Assembly (NCBI RefSeq): GCF_963921235.1
Contig: NC_086107.1
Span: 96,658,001 to 96,722,000 of the forward strand
Direction of reading: 5' to 3'
Origin: Mobula hypostoma
Taxonomy: Eukaryota
Length of the DNA stretch: 64,000 bases
Shown: piece by piece, positions 2,630 to 37,040 of the stretch
Layout of the letters: each line of letters starts with the position of its first letter
How positions within the stretch are numbered: the first letter of the stretch is position 1
Position numbers and translations under genes: made by a program
The notes under the pieces: generated by a model
What the model was told of the DNA's origin: nothing
The model's input: the letters and a program-made list of their open reading frames with translations, nothing else
The model's database searches: none

Positions 2630-4755
2630 CAAAGGGTTCAGGACCGATCCCAACCTTACCATCAAACCCGCAGACTAAGTGGGTGCTGTTGCAGTGTGGC
2701 GCACTGACCTCTGTCTTGCTGAGATCAGGCAGCACCTCTCACACTCCTCCTCAAACCTACCCCTTGAAGGGGACCACATCTCTGAGTCCATCACTGACCT
2801 CATCCACTCTGGAGAACTCCCATCACTGCTGCCAATCCCATATTTCCCTAGCTCCGTACTGCTCGCTCCTGCCTCCTACTCAAAATCCACAAACCTCACC
2901 GTCCAGGCCGGCCTATTGTCCCTGCCTGCTCCTGCCCCACTGAATTCGTGTCCTCGTACCTCAACTCCATTCTATCCCCCTTGGTTCAGTCTTGATCTAT
3001 CTTGCTCAGACCAGGCAGCACCTCTCACACTCCTGTGTCACCTCTCATGCCCTCGATCTTCTCAGTAACTTTCAGTTCCCTGGCCCTGACTGCCTCATTT
3101 TCACCATGGATGTTCAGTCTCTATACACTTCAATCCCCCACCCAGAAGGCCTGAAAGCTCTCTGTTTCGTTCTCAATAAAAGAACCAACCACTGGCTCCC
3201 TCCCACCATCACCACCACCCTCCATTTGGCAGAACTGGTCCTCACCCCCAACAATTTTTCCTTCAGCTCCTCCCACTTTCTCCAGACTCGAGAGATAGCC
3301 ATGGGGACCTTCATGGGCCAAGCTATGTCTGCCTCTTCACCGGCTACACAGAACAATCCTTGTTCCAAGCCTTCGCCAGTACTGCTCTCCAACTCTTCCT
3401 CTGCAACATTGATGACAGCATTGATGCACCCATGCTGAGCTCATCAATTTCATCAGCTTCCATCCTGTTCTTAAATTTACTTGGTCCACTTCTGACACTT
3501 CCCTCCCCTTTCTCGATCTATCTCTCTTTCCATCTCTGGAGGCAAACTGTCAACTGATTCCTACAGTTATCTCTTCACACCCTGTCTCCTGTAAAGATCC
3601 TATTCCCTTTTCTCAGTTCCTTCGCCTCCGCTGCATCATTCCCAGGATGCAGCCTTCCTTTCCAGGACATCAGAGATGTCCCACTCTCCTCAAAGAGTGG
3701 AGGTTCCCTTCCTCCATTATTGATGCTGCTCTCACCCGCATCTCCTTCATTTCCCGACAACTGTGCTCACCCCATCTTCCCGCCATCTTAACAGTGATAG
3801 TTTCCCTCATCCTTGCATACCATCTCATGAGCCCCTGCATCTGCCACATCATCCTCCACAACTCCGCCATCTCTAAAGGATTCCTGCCACTAAATATATC
3901 TTTATGGCCTTCCCCCCTACCACCCTCCACCCTCCACCCTCCACCCTCCACCCTCCACCCTCCACAGGGATTGCTTCCTCCATGATTCCCTTGTTCATTT
4001 GTCCCTCCTGACTAATCTCGCTCCCAGCACTTATCCCTGCAAGCAGCCTACGTGCTACACTTGTCTATTCACCTCCTCCCTCACCTCAATTCAGGGCCCC
4101 AAACAGTCCTTCTAGGTGAGGCTACACTTGCCCTGTGAGTCTGCCGGGGTTGTCTATCGTGTCTGGTGCTCCCAATGCGGCCTTTACATTGGTGAAACCC
4201 ATCGTAAGTTGTGGGATTGCTTCGTTGAGCACCTCCGCTCCACCCACCAGAAGCAGATCATCCCACTGGCCAAACATTTTAATTCCGATTCCCACTGCCA
4301 TTCCGACATGTCGGTCCATGGCCTCTTCTTGTGCCAAGATGAGACCACTTTCAGGGTGTAGGAGCGACAGCTTCTATTCCATCTGGGTAGCCTCCAACCT
4401 GATGGTATGAATATCAATTTCTCCTTCCAGGATTTTTTTTAACCTTCCCCTCCCCTCTTCTTTTATTCCCCACTCTGGCCTCTTCCCTCTTCTCACCTCC
4501 CCGGGTCCCCTCCTCCTTCCCTTTCTCCTGTGGTCCACTCTCCTCTCCTATCAGATTCCTTCCTCTCCAGACCTTTACCTTTCCCACCCACCTGGCTTCG
4601 CCTATCTCCTTCTGGCTATTCTGCTTCCCTTCCCCACACCTTTGTATTCTGGTATCTTCTCCCTTCCTTTCTGGTCTTGAAGAAGGTTTTCGCCCTATTC
4701 ATTTCCATAGATACTGCCTAATCTGCTGACTTCCTTCACATTTTGTGTGTGTTGC
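2630..4755 (+). mobile_element. Degenerate Penelope-like retroelement (RT + GIY-YIG fragments, 3' tail)
   Basis: Frameshifted peptides include TMDVQSLYTSIPH and IAMGT (RT motifs) and GVVYRVWCSQCGLYIGETHRKL...EH (GIY-YIG with CxxC). The 3' tail matches the other Penelope copies. A (CCACCCT)n run sits at about 3920-3965. Confidence 0.85.
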
Positions 4756-4880: not shown

Positions 4881-7455
4881 ACCATAGAACATTATAGCAC
4901 AGAAACAGGCCTTTTGGCCCTTCTTGGCTGTGCTGAACCATTTTTCTGCCTAGTCCCACTGACCTGCACCTGGACGATATCCCTCCATACACCTCTCATC
5001 CATGTACCTGTCCAAGGTTTTCTTAAATGTTAAAAGTGAGCCGCATTTACCACTTCATCTGGCAGCTCATTCCACACTCCCACCACTCTCTGTGTGAAGA
5101 AGCAGCCCCCCCAATGTTCCCTTTAAACTTTCTCCCCTTCACCCTTAACCCATGTCCTCTGGTTTTTTTCTCCCCTAGCCTCGGTGGAAAAAGCCTGCTT
5201 GCATTCACTCTATCTATACCCATCATAATTTTATATACCTCTATCAAATCTTCCCTCATTCTTCTACGCTCCAGGGAATAAAGTCCTAACCTATTCAATC
5301 TTTCCCTGTAACTTAGTTTCTCAAGTCCCGGCAACACCCTTGTAAACCTTCTCTGCACTCTTTCAACCTTATTAATATTCTTCCTGTAATTTGGTGACCA
5401 AAACTGCACACAATACTCCAAATTCGGCCTCACCAATGCCTTATACAACATCACCGTAACATTCCAACTCTTATACTCAATACTTTGATTTATAAAGGCC
5501 AATGTACCAGAAGTTCTCTTTATGACCCTATCTACCTGTGACGCCACTTATAGTGAATTTTGTGTCTGTATTCCCAGATCCCTCTGTTGTACTGCACTCC
5601 TCAGTGCCCTACCATTTACCTTGTATGTTCTACCTTGGTTTGTCCTTCTAAAGTGCAATACCTCACACTTGTCTGTATTAAACTCCATCTGCCATCTTTC
5701 AGCCCATTTTTCCAGCTGGTCCAAATTCCTCTGCAAGCTTTGAAAACCTGCCTCACTGTCCACTTCACCTCCAATCTTTGTGTCATCAGCAAATTTGCTG
5801 ATCTAATTTACCACATTATCATCCAGATCATTGATATAGATGACAAATGACAATGGACCCAGCACTGATCGCTGTGGCACACCACTAGTCACAGGCCTCC
5901 ACTCAGAGAAGCAATCCCCCACTACCACTCTCTGGCTTCTTCCATTGAGCCAATGTCTAATCCAATTTACTGCCTCTCCATGTATACCTAGTGACTGAAT
6001 CTTCGTAACTAACCTCCCATGCGGGACCTTGTCAAAGGCCTTACTGAAGTCCATGTAGACAACATCCACTGCCTTCCCTTCATCCACTTTCCTGGTAACC
6101 TCCTCGAAAAACTCTAATAGATTGGTTAAACATGACCTACCACGCACAAACCATGTTGACTCTCCCTAATAAGTCCCTGTTTATCCAAATGCTTGTAGAT
6201 CCTATCTCTTAGTACTCCTTCCAATAATTTACCTACTACCAACGTCAAACTTACTGGCCTATAATTTCCTGGATTACTTTTAGAACCTTTTTTAAATAAT
6301 GGAACAACATGAGCCACTTTCCAATCCTCTGACACCTCACCCGTAGACAGCGACATTTTAAATCTATCTGCCAAGGGCCCTGCAATTTCAACACTAGTCC
6401 CCTTCAAGGTCCGAGGGAACACCCTGTCAGGTCCTGGGAATTATTCTACTCTGATTTGCCTCAAGATAGCAAGCACCTCCACCTCCTCAATCTGTATAGG
6501 TTCCATGACCTCACCACTTGTTTGCCTTATTTCCATTGACTCTATGCCAGTTTCCTTAGTAAATACAGACGCAAAACACCCATTTAAGGTCTCCCCCATT
6601 TCTTTTGGTTCCATACATAGCCGACCTCTCTGATCTTCAAGAGGACCAATTTTATCCCTTACTATCCTTTTGCTCTTAATATACCTGTAGAAGCTGTTTG
6701 GATTATCCTTCACCTTGACTGCCAAAGCAACCTCATGTCTTCTTTTAGCCCTCCTGATTTCTTTCTTAAGTACTTTTTTTGCACTTTTTATACTCCTCAA
6801 GCACCTTATTTGCTCCCTGTTTCCCATACATGTCATACATCTCTCTCTTCTTCTTTATTGGAGTTCCAAAATCCCTCGAGAACCAAGGTTCCTTATTCCT
6901 ATTCACTTTGCCTTTAATCCTGACAGGAACATATAAACTCCGCACTCTCAAAATTTCTCCTTTGAAAGCCTCCCATTTACCAATTACATCCTTGCCAGAG
7001 AACATCCTGTCCCAATCCACGCTTTTTAGATCCTTTCTCTTTCTTCAAATTTGGCTTTTTTCCAGTTAAGAACCTCAACCCTAGGACCAGATCTATCTTT
7101 ATCCATGATCAAGTTGAAACTAATGGTGTTATGATCACTGGAGCCACAATGTTCCCCTACACACACTTCCATCACCTGTCCTAACTCGTTTCCTAATAGG
7201 AGATCTAATATTGCATCCTCTCTAGTTGGTACCTCTGTATATTGATTTAGAAAACTTTCCTGAACACATTTTATAAACTCTAAACAGTATGGGAATCCCA
7301 ATCAGTATGTGGAAAGTTAAAATCCCTTACTATCACAACTTTATGTTTCCTGCAGTTGCCTGCTATCTCTCTGCAGATTTCCTCCTCCAATTCTCGCTGA
7401 CTCGGTGGTCTATAATTATAACCCCTTTAATGTGGTCATACTTTCCTGTTTCTCA
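4881..7455 (-). mobile_element. CR1-clade LINE, 5'-truncated and frameshifted
   Basis: Minus ORFs give RT motifs ([30 protein letters not shown]), the C-terminal LYKALVRPNLEYCVQFW and endonuclease remnants (ILDLLLGN, SDHN). Confidence 0.9.
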
Positions 7456-30544: not shown

Positions 30545-32862
30545 CTGTAAAGCAAACGCGAGTCGTTACCGAGCGGTTCACAGACAGACAAGCCCGACAT
30601 CGCCTGGGAGGGGCCGCCGCTCCAGCTGCCAGACTGCGGGGGGAACTCGGCCAGTCGAGCAGCATCCGTGGAGGCAGAGGGACGGTCGCCACGCTGGGTC
30701 CTGCTCCAAGTTCCCGCGTCCGCAGACTCTTGTATTTCTGCTGAAACTGTAGATTTTCACTGGGTCAGAAATCATGGATTTCCTCAAAAATGGCCGAAGC
30801 TGAAAATCCACGGATGGAGACACAGAAGGATTCGGAAAGACGAACATGAACTATTTGAGATCAATGCCCTGATGGAGTGTCACTGACCTGGCACGTAACA
30901 CAGTCCTTTCCCCCATAATTGCTGCCTGAACTGCTGAGTATTTTCAACAATTTTTGCCTTCAGTTAGGTAAGAGGAGTGTTGGTGATCTGGTGTTAGTGA
31001 TACCTGATTCTTTTAGCTTTCCATGCATGTAATGTTAGATGCTCTCCAATTATACCAACACACACACAGATTTTGCAACTCAGCATTGTTCCACCCTAAT
31101 TAGCTCTTCTGCATCCTGACACTATCACTCAAACCTTTCTGAATCGAAGCAAAGTGCATTTCCAACATCTCCTCCATCCAGCTTTGTAAAAATATTTGCA
31201 TCCTTCAATGATAACCAAGTTTACCCTCCTGAACTCCAGAGACAAACAGATCAAGTTCAGAGAACACGTGCCCAACCTCTCAAGCACAGATCCCGCTTAC
31301 CTGAACATTTACCCCACTCTCAAACACAGTTAACTTTAACTTCATTTATTTTACTTTATCGTCGCCAAACAATTGATACTAGAGCATGCAATCATCACAG
31401 CGATATTGGATTCTGCGCTTTGCGCTCCCCGGAGTACAACTCAAAGCAGTTAATGCACACCTCCCAAACACATGCGATGCACACCTAGTCTCCCAAACAC
31501 ACATCTAGTTTATCCAAACACACAAAAAACCTGCAGGTGCCGGAAATCCAAAGTAACATACACAAAATGCTGGAGGAAGTCAGCAGGCCAGGCGGCATCT
31601 ATGGAAAAGAGTAAACAGTCAATGCTTTGGGCCGAGAGCCTTCTTCAGGACTGGAAAGGAAGGGGGAAAGAGTCAGACTAGGAAGGGGGGAAGGGGAGGA
31701 AGTAGTACAAGGTAGCAGGTGAAGGGTGAAACTGGGGGTTGAGGGGAAGATGGTGAAGAGCTGGGAAGTTGATTGGTGAAAGGGATAAAGGGCTGGAGAA
31801 GGACAGAGAGGACAGAAGATCGTGTCGTGGGAGATGGAAGATTGTAAGCAGCGAGCTGGCTGTTGGCTGTGTGCCCAGAGAACCGAGGTCTTAAGGCACA
31901 GAGCTTGGAAAAAGCGATGCAATAGACTTTTAACACCATAAATTGGCGAGCTATTTTGTTATGTCTCCCCTCTTGCTGTGAAATGAGAACACTTCTTTTT
32001 CCCTTATTAGGGAGAGAGAGAGCCTATGGTATGTCGAATTACCGGGTGAGCGAGTAGTCTTTGGGGTACTGCAAGTCTGTGTCTTTATTGATGCTTTGCT
32101 GCATGCTTGAGTGCTCGGTGGGGGGTGCAGATGCTGTTTTGCTGGTGGGGGGGGTCGTCGCTTTGCTGCTGCTTATGCATGGGAGGGGGGAGCTGGGGGG
32201 GGCTTTGGGGTTCTAATGTTCAACTCTCGTTCTTTGGGGCACCCCTCTGTTTTCATCCATGTTTGCAAAGAAAAGGAATTTCAGAATGTATATTGTTAGT
32301 TGTTTCTCTGACATTAAATTGAACCTATTGAGAAGAAAGGGAAGGGGGAGGAGCACCAGAGGGAGGTGATGGGCAGGTAAGGAGATAAGGCGAGAGAGGG
32401 AAACAGGAATGGGGAACGGTGAGGGAGAGGAGGTGGGAGGCCGATTTCCAAAGATTTGAGAAATTGATGTTAATGCCATCTGGATGGCATAAATGTTTAC
32501 CCAATGTGGGCTCAGTTTACTCCATGTTGTTCCAGCCCACTCAGTGTTGATTGTCTGTATAATGTATGCGTATGAAGAGATGACTTTTAATGCAGGTGCG
32601 ACCAATGCAAAGTTTCTACTGAAACACAACAAATTTCAGGTTCCTGCTGGAACTTGTGGAACTGGGTCATGCAGCCGAAATACTTCCACGTACACACAGA
32701 GTATTTCATTGGCGTGCACTGTAATATTTATCATTGTTGTAAGAAGAGTGGTTCAAATGCACTCCACACTCAAGAGTGGGTACACCTGCTTGTTAGTGCA
32801 AATATCTAATCAGCCAGTCACTAGATGCATAAAAGCATGCAGACGTGGTCAAGAGGTCCAGT

Positions 32863-32970
32863 GTGCCTCTCTCTGGCAGCACATCTACTAGAATTGGAAT
32901 GATACGGAGAAGATTAGCAAGGCCCCTGTGCAAGGATGACATGCAAATTCATGAAGTGTTCCATATTTTT
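32863..32970 (+). pseudogene. U6: Full-length U6 snRNA retrocopy
   Basis: From GGCAGC to CATATTTTT the sequence aligns with vertebrate U6 with 9 substitutions by eye, 5 of them CpG-type. The ACAGAGA box is mutated to ACGGAGA and no U6 promoter is visible upstream. Confidence 0.92.
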
Positions 32971-33538
32971 GGGAATAGACCTTCCACCTAGGAAATCAGA
33001 AGCTAAAGGGTTGGTCGGCTTAAGATTAGGGGGTTACGGCAAGACTTGTGCGATAATGGACCTAAGGGGTATCTTTACACAATACACAAAACTGTTGTGT
33101 TTATGGGGAGGAGGGCCGGTCAAACAAAAAGGGAAAGAATTATTTTGACACGAATTAGAACTGAGCATACTATGCTTATTTATTCCTTGTATCTTTTTGG
33201 AAAATGTCATTTTGGATTGTGTAAGCTTTGTCATCACTATGAAACAATTGAACATATACTTCTACAATTGAATCATATAAGATTGAAAGAAACCAAATGT
33301 GGGCTTCATTACAATATTTGGTGGTTGATAGTTTTCATTTAAAAACTTTAAGACAGTGTCATCTTTCATTACTTACAGTCTGTAGGGCTCTTTGGGGTTA
33401 TTTAGCCTTCATTTGAAAGAGAAGCAGTAAGGGTTTTATTTCCCACCTCTCTACACCACACTCCGGTTCGCTTGGTGGTGGTAATGCACCTTTAAATTGG
33501 ACTGCCAACCACCATAGAAAGTCAGAAGGAAAAAAAAG
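32971..33538 (+). mobile_element. Nimb/I-clade LINE 3' end
   Basis: Peptide IILTRIRTEHTMLIYSLYLFGKCHFGLCKLCHHYETIEHILLQ is a degenerate I-group C-terminal zinc knuckle. The 3' end has ggtggtggtaatgcacc...gccaaccacc and an A/G-rich tail. Clade assignment is from recalled consensus, not a search. Confidence 0.7.
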
Positions 33539-34854
33539 AGTTTTTGTTGTTCAGACCGAACATCACAATGGAGAAGAAATGTGGTCTAAGAAACCATAAC
33601 AATTTAGTGATCGCTGGTGCTGGACGAGGTGGTTTGCGTATCTCAGAAACTGCTGATCTCCTGGGATTTCCGCGCACAACAGTCTCTAGGGTTTACAGAG
33701 AATGGCATGAAAAGCAAAAAAAAAAACGCATCCAGTGAGTGGCAGTTCTTTGGGTGAAAATGAGAGGTCAGAGGAGAAATAGCCAGTCTGATTCAAGCTG
33801 ACGGGAAGGTGACAGTGACTCAAATAACCACACATTATGACAGTGGTATGCAGAAAAGCAGCTCTGAATGCACAACATTTCAAACCTTGAAGTGGATGAG
33901 CTACGGCAGCAGAAGACCACATTAAAACCTTCTAGAACTTTCCATTTAACCCCTCTCTGTAATTTATTCTAAAAACACCCATGAGTTTTGATTCTTTAAT
34001 GATTACTATTATACCAGTCTTTGAGGTGATGCATTCCTGATCACAATCTGCTACATGAACAATTTCCTCAATCACTTGAAATGTGAATTTGTAAAGAAGT
34101 CCCCAGCACAAAGTTCAGTGGAGACACATTCCTGACCTGACACAGTTCTCCCCCACCACAGACACAGCTTGATCGGCTGAGTTCCTCCAGCGGATTTGCT
34201 TGTTGCTACAAAACTCAATGACTGAAAGTTTGGTTGATTGCTGAACTCGGCAAAATGTTTGCAGAAGTTTCGGCTCCAACCGAGAAGCCATCGTTGCACA
34301 GTTTAGGGTGTTGTCTCCTCGGAATGCCGGCTTATATACTCCTCTGAGGTCCGAATGGATCTTGATTTGATGTCATGATCTGGGTGACTGGTCAAAACAC
34401 TGAACAGTGTAGACTGAAACCTACAATCAGTGCATCAATGGAGACTGAAGGGAAGTCGAGGTGAAGTGAAACCGCTTAAGTTTTGAGTAACATTTCCAAG
34501 TGGCCTCACTGGCTGAAGGGCATTTTGGGAAGTGCGCAGAGGACATCAGAGATTGAGTTGATCACAGGAAATCAGTAGCAGGGCCTATATATTTTGTCCC
34601 AAAAATATTCTTTATTATTTGAATTTGTAAATATAAGAGCTCAGGAAATGGCCTTTAGGCCCACTAGTCTATGCTGACAATAAAGCATCCTGTTGCACCA
34701 AAATCCCATTTGATTCTCCCACATTCCTGTCAAGCACACCGCTCCCCCTCCCTTGATTTTACCACTCCACTTCACACTAGGAACAGCTTACTGACCCATG
34801 CATCCTTGAAACACGGGCAGAGTAAAAACATGCAGGAAAAACTCGCAGTCAGAA

Positions 34855-35380: not shown

Positions 35381-35749
35381 ACCTGCATCCTAAGGGTTTT
35401 GAAAGAGGTGGCGATGAAGGTAGTCAGCCCATTGGTTGTCATCTGCCAACACTCCAGAGACTGTAGCATGTTGCCCATAGAGTGGAAGCGGGTCAATGCA
35501 ATAGGACTAAAGTTGGCCTAACTTTAGCAGTGGGGAGATTGGAAGAGTTGATAAAGAAAAAATTGATAACAGAACATATAAGAGGATTGGGCAGAGTCAA
35601 CAAGGATTGATGAAAGGGAAATCATGTTTGACAATACAGTACATTAGAACAGGCCTGGTGATGCGGTGCATATGGACAATAAGATGTCACACAAAAGATT
35701 AAAGTACAGAGTACCTGGAGGCATATGACAAGATAGGCAGAACTCAGCA

Positions 35750-37040
35750 TGGATTCCTTAAAGGAAAATCCTGCCTGACAAACCTATTACAATTTTTTGA
35801 GGAAATTACCAGTAGGCTAGACAAGGGAGATGCAGTGGATGTTGTATATTTGGATTTTCAGAAGGCCTTTGACAAGGTGCCACACATGAGGCTACTTAAC
35901 AAGATAAGAGCCCATGGAATTACGGGAAAGTTACATATGTGGATAGAGCGTTGGCTGATTGGCAGGAAACAGAGAGTGGGAATAAAGGGATCCTATTCTG
36001 GTTGGCTGCTGGTTACCAGTGGTGTTCCACAGGGGACGGTGTTGGGGCCGCTTCTTTTTACATTGCACATCAACGATTTGGATTATGGAATAGATGGCTT
36101 TGTGGCTAAGTTTGCTGACGATACGAAGATAGGTGGAGGGGCCGGTAGTGCTGAGGAAACGGAGAGTCTGCAGAGAGACTTGGATAGATTGGAAGAATGG
36201 GCAAAGAAGTGGCAAATGAAATACAATGTTGGAAAGTGTATGGTTATGCACTTGGGCAGAAGAAATAAATGGGCAGACTATTATTTAAATGGGGAAAGAA
36301 TTCAAAGTTCTGAGATGCAACGGGACTTGGGAGTCCTCGTACAGGATACCCTTAAGGTTAACCTCCAGGTTGAGTCGGTGGTGAAGAAGGCGAATGCAAT
36401 GTTGGCATTCATTTCTAGAGGAATAGAGTATAGGAGCAGGGATGTGATCTTGAGGCTCTATAAGGCACTGGTGAGACCTCACTTGGAGTACTGTGGGCAG
36501 TTTTGGTCTCCTTATTTAAGAAAGGATGTGCTGACGTTGGAGAGGGTATAGAGAAGATTCACTAGAATGATTTCAGGAATGAGAGGGTTAACATATGAGG
36601 AACGTTTGTCCGCTCTTGGACTGTATTCCTTGGAGTTTAGAAGAATGAGGGGAGACCTCATAGAAACATTTCGAATGTTGAAAGGCATGGACAGAGTGGA
36701 TGTGGCAAAGTTGTTTCCCATGATGGGGGAGTCTAGTACGAGAGGGCATAACTTAAGGATTGAAGGGCGCCCATTCAGAACAGAAATGTGAAGAAATTTT
36801 TTTTAGTTAGAGGGTGGTGAATCTATGGAATTTGTTGCCATGGGCAGCAGTGGAGGCCAAGTCATTGGGTGTATTTAAGGCAGAGACTGATAGGTATCTG
36901 AGTAGCCAGGGCATCAAAGGTTATGGTGAGAAGGCGGGGGAGTGGGACTAAATGGGAGAATGGATCAGCTCATGATAAAATGGCGGAGCAGACTCGATGG
37001 GTCAAATGGCCAACTTCTGCTCCTTTGTCTTATGGTCTTA
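35750..37040 (+). mobile_element. Relatively young CR1 LINE 3' part
   Basis: 238-aa open RT segment ([43 protein letters not shown]), followed by the 3' UTR. Confidence 0.92.

Follow-up and report, generated by a model that had tools for sequence, protein, structure and literature searches.

Chimeric retrocopies that join U6 small nuclear RNA to a LINE serve as markers of the way in which LINE reverse transcriptase deals with RNAs other than its own, and of ligation between RNAs that precedes retrotransposition. The genomic U6/L1 chimeras comprise a full-length U6 ending in 5-7 T and a variably 5'-truncated L1, and the mature U6 RNA terminates in five U and bears a 2',3'-cyclic phosphate, an end which RtcB can ligate to RNA with a 5'-OH (PMC6789731). 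In platypus, Doucet et al. (2015) described U6 joined to L2 and to Mon-1, and in Anolis to LINEs of the L1-like, L2-like and RTE-like types; they concluded that autonomous non-LTR elements have this property in general, and their survey contains no I-group cases and includes no fish (PMC4476161). A related type of composite is represented by the SINEU families, in which U1 or U2 heads are combined with LINE tails (Kojima 2015, PMC4494074). The documented LINE partners of U6 so far are L1, L2 and RTE-type elements in mammals and a lizard, and neither a fish case nor one with an I/Nimb LINE was encountered in the literature searched. Nimb LINEs are known from insects, molluscs, teleosts and a turtle, with relics in tetrapods and coelacanth (PMC9004415).

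We examined a U6/LINE unit from a ray, Mobula hypostoma, within a window of 64 kb (the whole stretch of DNA analysed, to which all positions refer unless a contig is named). This copy looks like the known U6/LINE chimeras, in a cartilaginous fish and with another LINE group. With the mammalian U6/LINE-1 chimeras (Buzdin 2002; PMC4476161; PMC6789731) it shares a full-length U6 with about five T, a spacer-free, sense-oriented and 5'-truncated LINE, apparent insertion of the unit as one piece, and the state of a dead pseudogene. It differs from them in that the ray LINE is of an RNase H-bearing lineage of the I group and not L1, ends in a 3' hairpin and a (GAA)n-type tail where L1 has poly(A), resides in a cartilaginous fish, and is flanked by an ambiguous target duplication.

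The chimeras of platypus (L2 and Mon-1) and Anolis (L2-like and RTE-like) provide a closer parallel, as their LINEs likewise need a 3' structure or repeat tail and the complete 3' end of these 'stringent' LINEs is kept (PMC4476161). Target duplications of the platypus chimeras are reported there as 1-9 bp, short or unclear, much as in the ray; most of the platypus copies are 5'-truncated within U6, whereas the ray U6 is complete, and both the LINE clade and the host lineage of the ray copy lie outside that survey (PMC4476161). The SINEU families resemble the ray unit in having an snRNA-derived 5' part and a LINE-derived 3' part, but they are multi-copy and short (PMC4494074), whereas the ray unit is one observed copy with a 570-nt piece of LINE coding and UTR sequence and a U6 head that is unable to carry its own promoter. 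The first-pass annotation of this DNA had suggested that a U6 chimera with an I/Nimb LINE in an elasmobranch may extend the mechanism beyond mammalian L1. This has to be narrowed, as L2, RTE and L1-like LINEs already figured as U6 partners in the 2015 publication; the I group and fishes are absent from it (PMC4476161), and to this extent the claim stands.

Results

The U6 copy occupies positions 32863-32970 of the forward strand and matches Rfam family RF00026 with 96.9 bits (E 8e-24; gathering score 44) over model positions 1-105 of 105. Its terminus is aligned by Rfam as UUUUU (T5 at 32966-32970), which bears out the earlier description of a full-length U6 with five terminal T, and it is the sole Rfam match in the 64-kb window. 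The invariant core has decayed: in the Rfam alignment ACAGAGA has become ACGGAGA and GCAUGG has become GCAAGG, and the core carries three C-to-U (C-to-T) changes at CpG sites, in AACG, UGCG and CACG. Set against what we take to be the vertebrate U6 sequence, the ray copy has about 13 differences in 107 nt (~12%), of which about half are CpG transitions. CpG content gives no separation in age between U6, LINE and Tc1 (observed/expected ratio of 0.35 in the LINE piece and 0.38 in the window).

The U6 copy is a retropseudogene, since its 5' side is directly adjoined by the leader of a Tc1 element and not by a U6 promoter, and the U6/LINE copy is functionless today. A TATA-like sequence, cataaaag, is located at 32828-32835, 28-35 nt 5' of the U6 start; it derives from the Tc1 leader, where intact leaders read catagaag or catttagg at this site, and is probably a coincidence because the ACAGAGA box of the U6 is mutated.

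The terminal T5 of U6 (32970) is joined directly to the LINE (32971) in sense orientation, with no A-tail or filler between the two parts and no microhomology at the U6/LINE junction (ttttt/ggg). The LINE piece in the chimera amounts to approximately 570 nt, with recognizable homology on the same strand from ~32986, in agreement with the annotated spacer-free union of U6 with a 5'-truncated LINE in the same orientation. A second copy of U6, LINE or Tc1 was not found in the 64-kb window. Parts of the window also occur in runs from two related organisms, which contain 22% and 6% of the words sampled.

Frame 1 from 32971 encodes the C-terminal part of a LINE ORF2, a 5'-truncated remnant of the last ~123 codons (32971-33342, forward strand; ORF end at 33340-33342) that was recognized by phmmer and by a profile derived from its matches. 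It is interrupted by in-frame stops at 32989-32991 and 33004-33006 and contains the motif ILTRIRTEHTML at 33142-33177 and the motif CKLCHHYETIEHILLQL at 33220-33270, the zinc knuckle region. Translation and alignment with relatives define the latter as a degenerate knuckle, CKLC-x7-H-x4-L, as had been proposed: the first and second Cys are invariant in all 62 relatives, and the last Cys is replaced by L in the ray copy. Pfam and a word-indexed protein search gave nothing meaningful for this C-terminus, and an exact-product look-up of two ORFs from the window, of 73 and 78 aa, returned no match; relatives were found only by the exhaustive phmmer scan, which gave 62 matches (best E 3.4e-8, 35-45% identity). 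The profile built from these matches scores 73 bits (E 2e-21) on 33007-33339, with no further match in the six-frame translation of the 64-kb window. Alignment with 12 relatives carries the homology to ~32986 (PSTxEIRS in the ray, SKxEIKS in the relatives), which is 5 codons past the U6 T-run and just downstream of the end of the relatives' RNase H.

The class of the LINE can be approached through the domain layout of these relatives. Pfam places RNase_H directly N-terminal of the matched stretch in 10 of the 10 longest phmmer matches and detects it in 21 of the 62, the remainder being fragments too short to show it. The layout is illustrated by P0027 (1251 aa), in which Exo_endo_phos, RVT_1 and RNase_H are followed by this C-terminal domain, and no other LINE-specific Pfam family occurs among the 62 matches. 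RNase H among animal LINEs has been reported from the I group (PMC4640811). Because the long relatives of the C-terminal domain all carry RNase H, the broad class of an RNase H-bearing, I-group layout is supported. The LINE fragment itself is without an RT domain, and within the I group Nimb is one candidate clade beside I and others. The I-group label given to the element earlier is upheld at this level. An L1/Tx1 class, which had been named as the outcome contradicting that label, was looked for by phmmer and Pfam and is rejected: the 62 matches contain no L1-type relative, the long ones all carry RNase H, and the tail is of (GAA)n type behind a conserved hairpin and not poly(A). Two further RT remnants are present in the window at 35712-36746 (+) and 5236-6788 (-), which share only 21-28% identity with the RT found in the I-group relatives. 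These remnants belong to different elements and were rejected as the missing 5' part of the LINE on account of wrong position or strand.

The LINE 3' UTR extends from 33343 to 33523 (+), between the ORF2 stop and a purine tail. As a whole it folds no better than its shuffles (z 0.25), and support is restricted to a terminal hairpin and comes from comparison. An alignment with 9 relatives defines a conserved 3' module at 33449-33516 (+), composed of a CCACACTCC box and a hairpin with the stem TGGCGGT...ACCGCCA (33476-33482 / 33508-33514). Two contigs found via their proteins, L006 from Xiphophorus and the Logan contig L007, end in a module of the ray type, with the CCACACTCC box, hairpin, a few bases and purine tail in the same order (window 33449-33540; L006 2727-2811; L007 2838-2920); the tail of both contigs is GAAGAAGAAGAA. 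A hairpin pattern scan of metagenome contigs yielded 7 more members (L008-L014), all with purine (GAA)n-type tails. In the resulting 10-sequence alignment 29 of ~75 columns are invariant and the consensus hairpin has 10 pairs (7+3 bp), for which the independent evidence comes from L006, L007 and the ray copy only, because the 7 scan matches were selected by their stem sequence. Pairing in the ray stem is kept via a double change from C:G to T:A at 33479/33511. The module is thus common to a ray and a live-bearing teleost, though the adjacent protein domain has an identity of just 35-45%. The CCACACTCC box, hairpin and (GAA)n-type tail are probably the element recognised by the reverse transcriptase of this LINE.

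The purine tail agaaggaaaaaaaagag (33524-33540, +) appears, in comparison with the relatives, as a decayed (GAA)n-type tail in which a run of A8 (33530-33537) is followed by gag (33538-33540). As tails of relatives include AAGAG ends (L013 and L014), the gag probably belongs to the tail of the LINE, which places the end of the insert at 33540 and not, as initially annotated, at 33538. With the hairpin and the purine tail that its 9 relatives also have, the LINE is complete at its 3' end.

The unit resides in a Tc1-type element. The leader to the left of the break (32781-32862, +) was identified by blastn to L002-L005; over its last 43 nt it is 84-86% identical to L002/L003, and it breaks off exactly at the point from which the right flank continues. 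The right flank (33545-33925, +) comprises the resumed leader (tgttgtt...) and a decayed N-terminal transposase remnant, identified by blastn and HTH_23, that begins with an ATG at 33568, includes the HTH_23 match in the window piece and is truncated near 33925. By blastn this flank is 79% identical to L005 over 389 nt and 71% identical to L004 over 386 nt; L004 continues with HTH_Tnp_Tc3_2 and DDE_3. By homology, then, the host element is a Tc1/mariner DNA transposon. The intact leader of L002/L003, which come from another organism, reads ggtcaagaggttcagt followed immediately by tgttgtttagac; the window leader breaks off after aagaggtccagt (32862) and is taken up again at 33545 with tgttgttcagacc. 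Because the intact leader matches both sides end to end, U6, LINE and tail fill one break with zero Tc1 bases lost relative to L002/L003, and the annotated splitting of a leader that resumes in register is confirmed.

The flanks of the unit contain two candidate repeats. Comparison with L002/L003 suggests that the 12 bp before U6, aagaggtccagt (32851-32862, +), are the 5' copy of a target duplication; this sequence equals the aagaggttcagt of the intact leader with one change. A possible decayed 3' copy is aagagtttt (33536-33544, +), which overlaps the tail and gives a gapped match to aagaggttcagt with 8 matches, 1 mismatch and one 3-nt gap. In simulation, an equal or better match arises by chance with P = 0.07 when the 5' copy is taken as it now stands and P = 0.009 when the intact-leader sequence is used, values to be read with the fact that aagag is indistinguishable from the LINE tail. 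A 12-bp duplication would require a 3-nt deletion and one substitution in the 3' copy. The duplication as first annotated was ungapped, and its count of 8/12 is right, but on this reading 3 bases of the downstream Tc1 leader would be missing, and the proposal is weakened by the gag that probably belongs to the LINE tail. The other repeat is a second T5 run at 33541-33545 (+), seen in the sequence and in the intact-leader comparison and identical to the terminal T5 of U6. This T5/T5 repeat (32966-32970 and 33541-33545) is perfect and flanks the LINE part alone. Only the last T of the second run is expected from the Tc1 leader; the four extra T's may stem from a decayed duplication or point to a two-step history, and are otherwise unexplained.

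A search for duplications around the 7 relatives gave one verified case. The contig L009 (3103-3790) contains a 660-nt 5'-truncated related LINE with a verified, perfect 8-bp duplication: its homology to L011 begins exactly at 3111, after gttacgtc, and gttacgtc recurs right after the tail. With such a duplication present in L009, the group evidently makes duplications of the order of 8 bp. L013 provided a 9-bp candidate, and in the remaining relatives the 5' ends are off the contig or a duplication was undetected. The 3' flanks of the 7 relatives show no T-run preference.

Discussion

The locus is probably the product of one old retrotransposition event that put a copy of a chimeric U6/LINE RNA into the Tc1 leader. 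The RNA would have consisted of a complete U6, including the five U of its natural terminus, followed head-to-tail by the final ~570 nt of a transcript from an I-group LINE. Most likely, the LINE reverse transcriptase started at the LINE purine tail on a nicked target; the nick would have lain beside the aagag of the Tc1 leader, a site that offers possible microhomology to the tail, and the conserved 3' hairpin with the (GAA)n-type tail was probably what the enzyme recognised. The enzyme would then have copied the LINE 3' part (~570 nt) and continued onto U6 as far as the U6 5' end. The two RNAs may have been joined by prior ligation, as the host ligase RtcB accepts the 2',3'-cyclic phosphate of U6, or through a template switch by the LINE enzyme; a single copy is compatible with both routes. 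If the LINE recognises its own 3' hairpin, the product of both routes must keep the LINE 3' end, as is found here, and the same argument from 3'-end retention was made for the 'stringent' LINE of the platypus L2 chimeras (PMC4476161).

The likely joint arrival of U6 and LINE is favoured by several features of the locus. A full-length U6, 5-7 T and a variably 5'-truncated LINE are the published description of such chimeras, and the unit fills one Tc1 break without loss of a base. The LINE homology starts ~5 codons past the T-run, in sense and without A-tail or filler, and the unit has the complete LINE 3' end that mobilisation of an attached RNA by a 'stringent' LINE requires. The resemblance of the 9 nt before the leader resumption to the 12 nt before U6 (P 0.009-0.07) points in the same direction and is consistent with a decayed 12-bp target duplication. 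Against a single event stand the existence of just one copy, the mutations that the 12-bp duplication needs together with the ambiguity of aagag, and the T5/T5 repeat, which a two-step history explains without an extra mutation.

In such a two-step history, a U6 copy was already present in the Tc1 leader and a 5'-truncated LINE was later inserted into its T-run, so that T5 is the duplication made by the LINE. The perfect T5 runs, the second of them directly after the purine tail, are what this sequence of events would produce, no extra mutations are necessary, and the AAGAG ends found among the relatives' tails would leave nothing between tail and T5 unexplained. We nevertheless regard it as unlikely. 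Its first step, the insertion of a U6 with neither A-tail, LINE tail nor duplication, flush between cagt and tgttg, lacks a known mechanism, and the history would have to put the likeness between aagag and the 5' flank down to chance. The target of 5 bases is very small and the sole verified duplication in the LINE group is 8 bp, not 5; the 3' flanks of the 7 relatives, being without T-run preference, also give no reason to favour a chance landing on the T-run of U6. Less probable still is a history in which the U6-LINE fusion was made once elsewhere, for example when a LINE entered a U6 gene at its terminator, and later spread by repeated transcription and retrotransposition with its junction inherited. 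The T-run after the tail could in that case be a Pol III stop, but the external U6 promoter would not be carried along, which leaves the copy unable to drive itself, Pol III would be stopped by five runs of at least 4 T within the LINE piece, and a U6-headed SINE was not found in the literature searched (PMC4494074); the external promoter and the five internal T-runs in particular make an inherited composite improbable. The least credible of the histories has U6 retroposed beside a resident 5'-truncated LINE fragment. Adjacency itself would be accounted for, but U6 lacks an A-tail, has no duplication of its own (its flanks ggtccagt and gggaatag are unrelated), and would have to have struck the exact LINE/Tc1 boundary.

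Conclusions

The mechanistic insight to be gained from this locus is small, as it consists of a single copy with ~12% decay and an ambiguous target duplication. Its value is comparative: in combining U6 with an RNase H-bearing LINE of the I group, the ray case adds a host lineage and a LINE group to the known range of U6/LINE chimeras, and it fits the published claim of generality. A further reading, which we put forward tentatively and hold to be somewhat doubtful, is that, in cartilaginous fishes, I-group LINEs with a hairpin and a (GAA)n tail capture U6 as a recurring pathway. If this were true, host-side joining of U6 to LINE RNA, whether by ligation or by template switching, would predate the split between cartilaginous and bony vertebrates, and it would operate on LINE 3' fragments whose mobilisation in trans goes via their 3' hairpin, independent of L1 and of poly(A).
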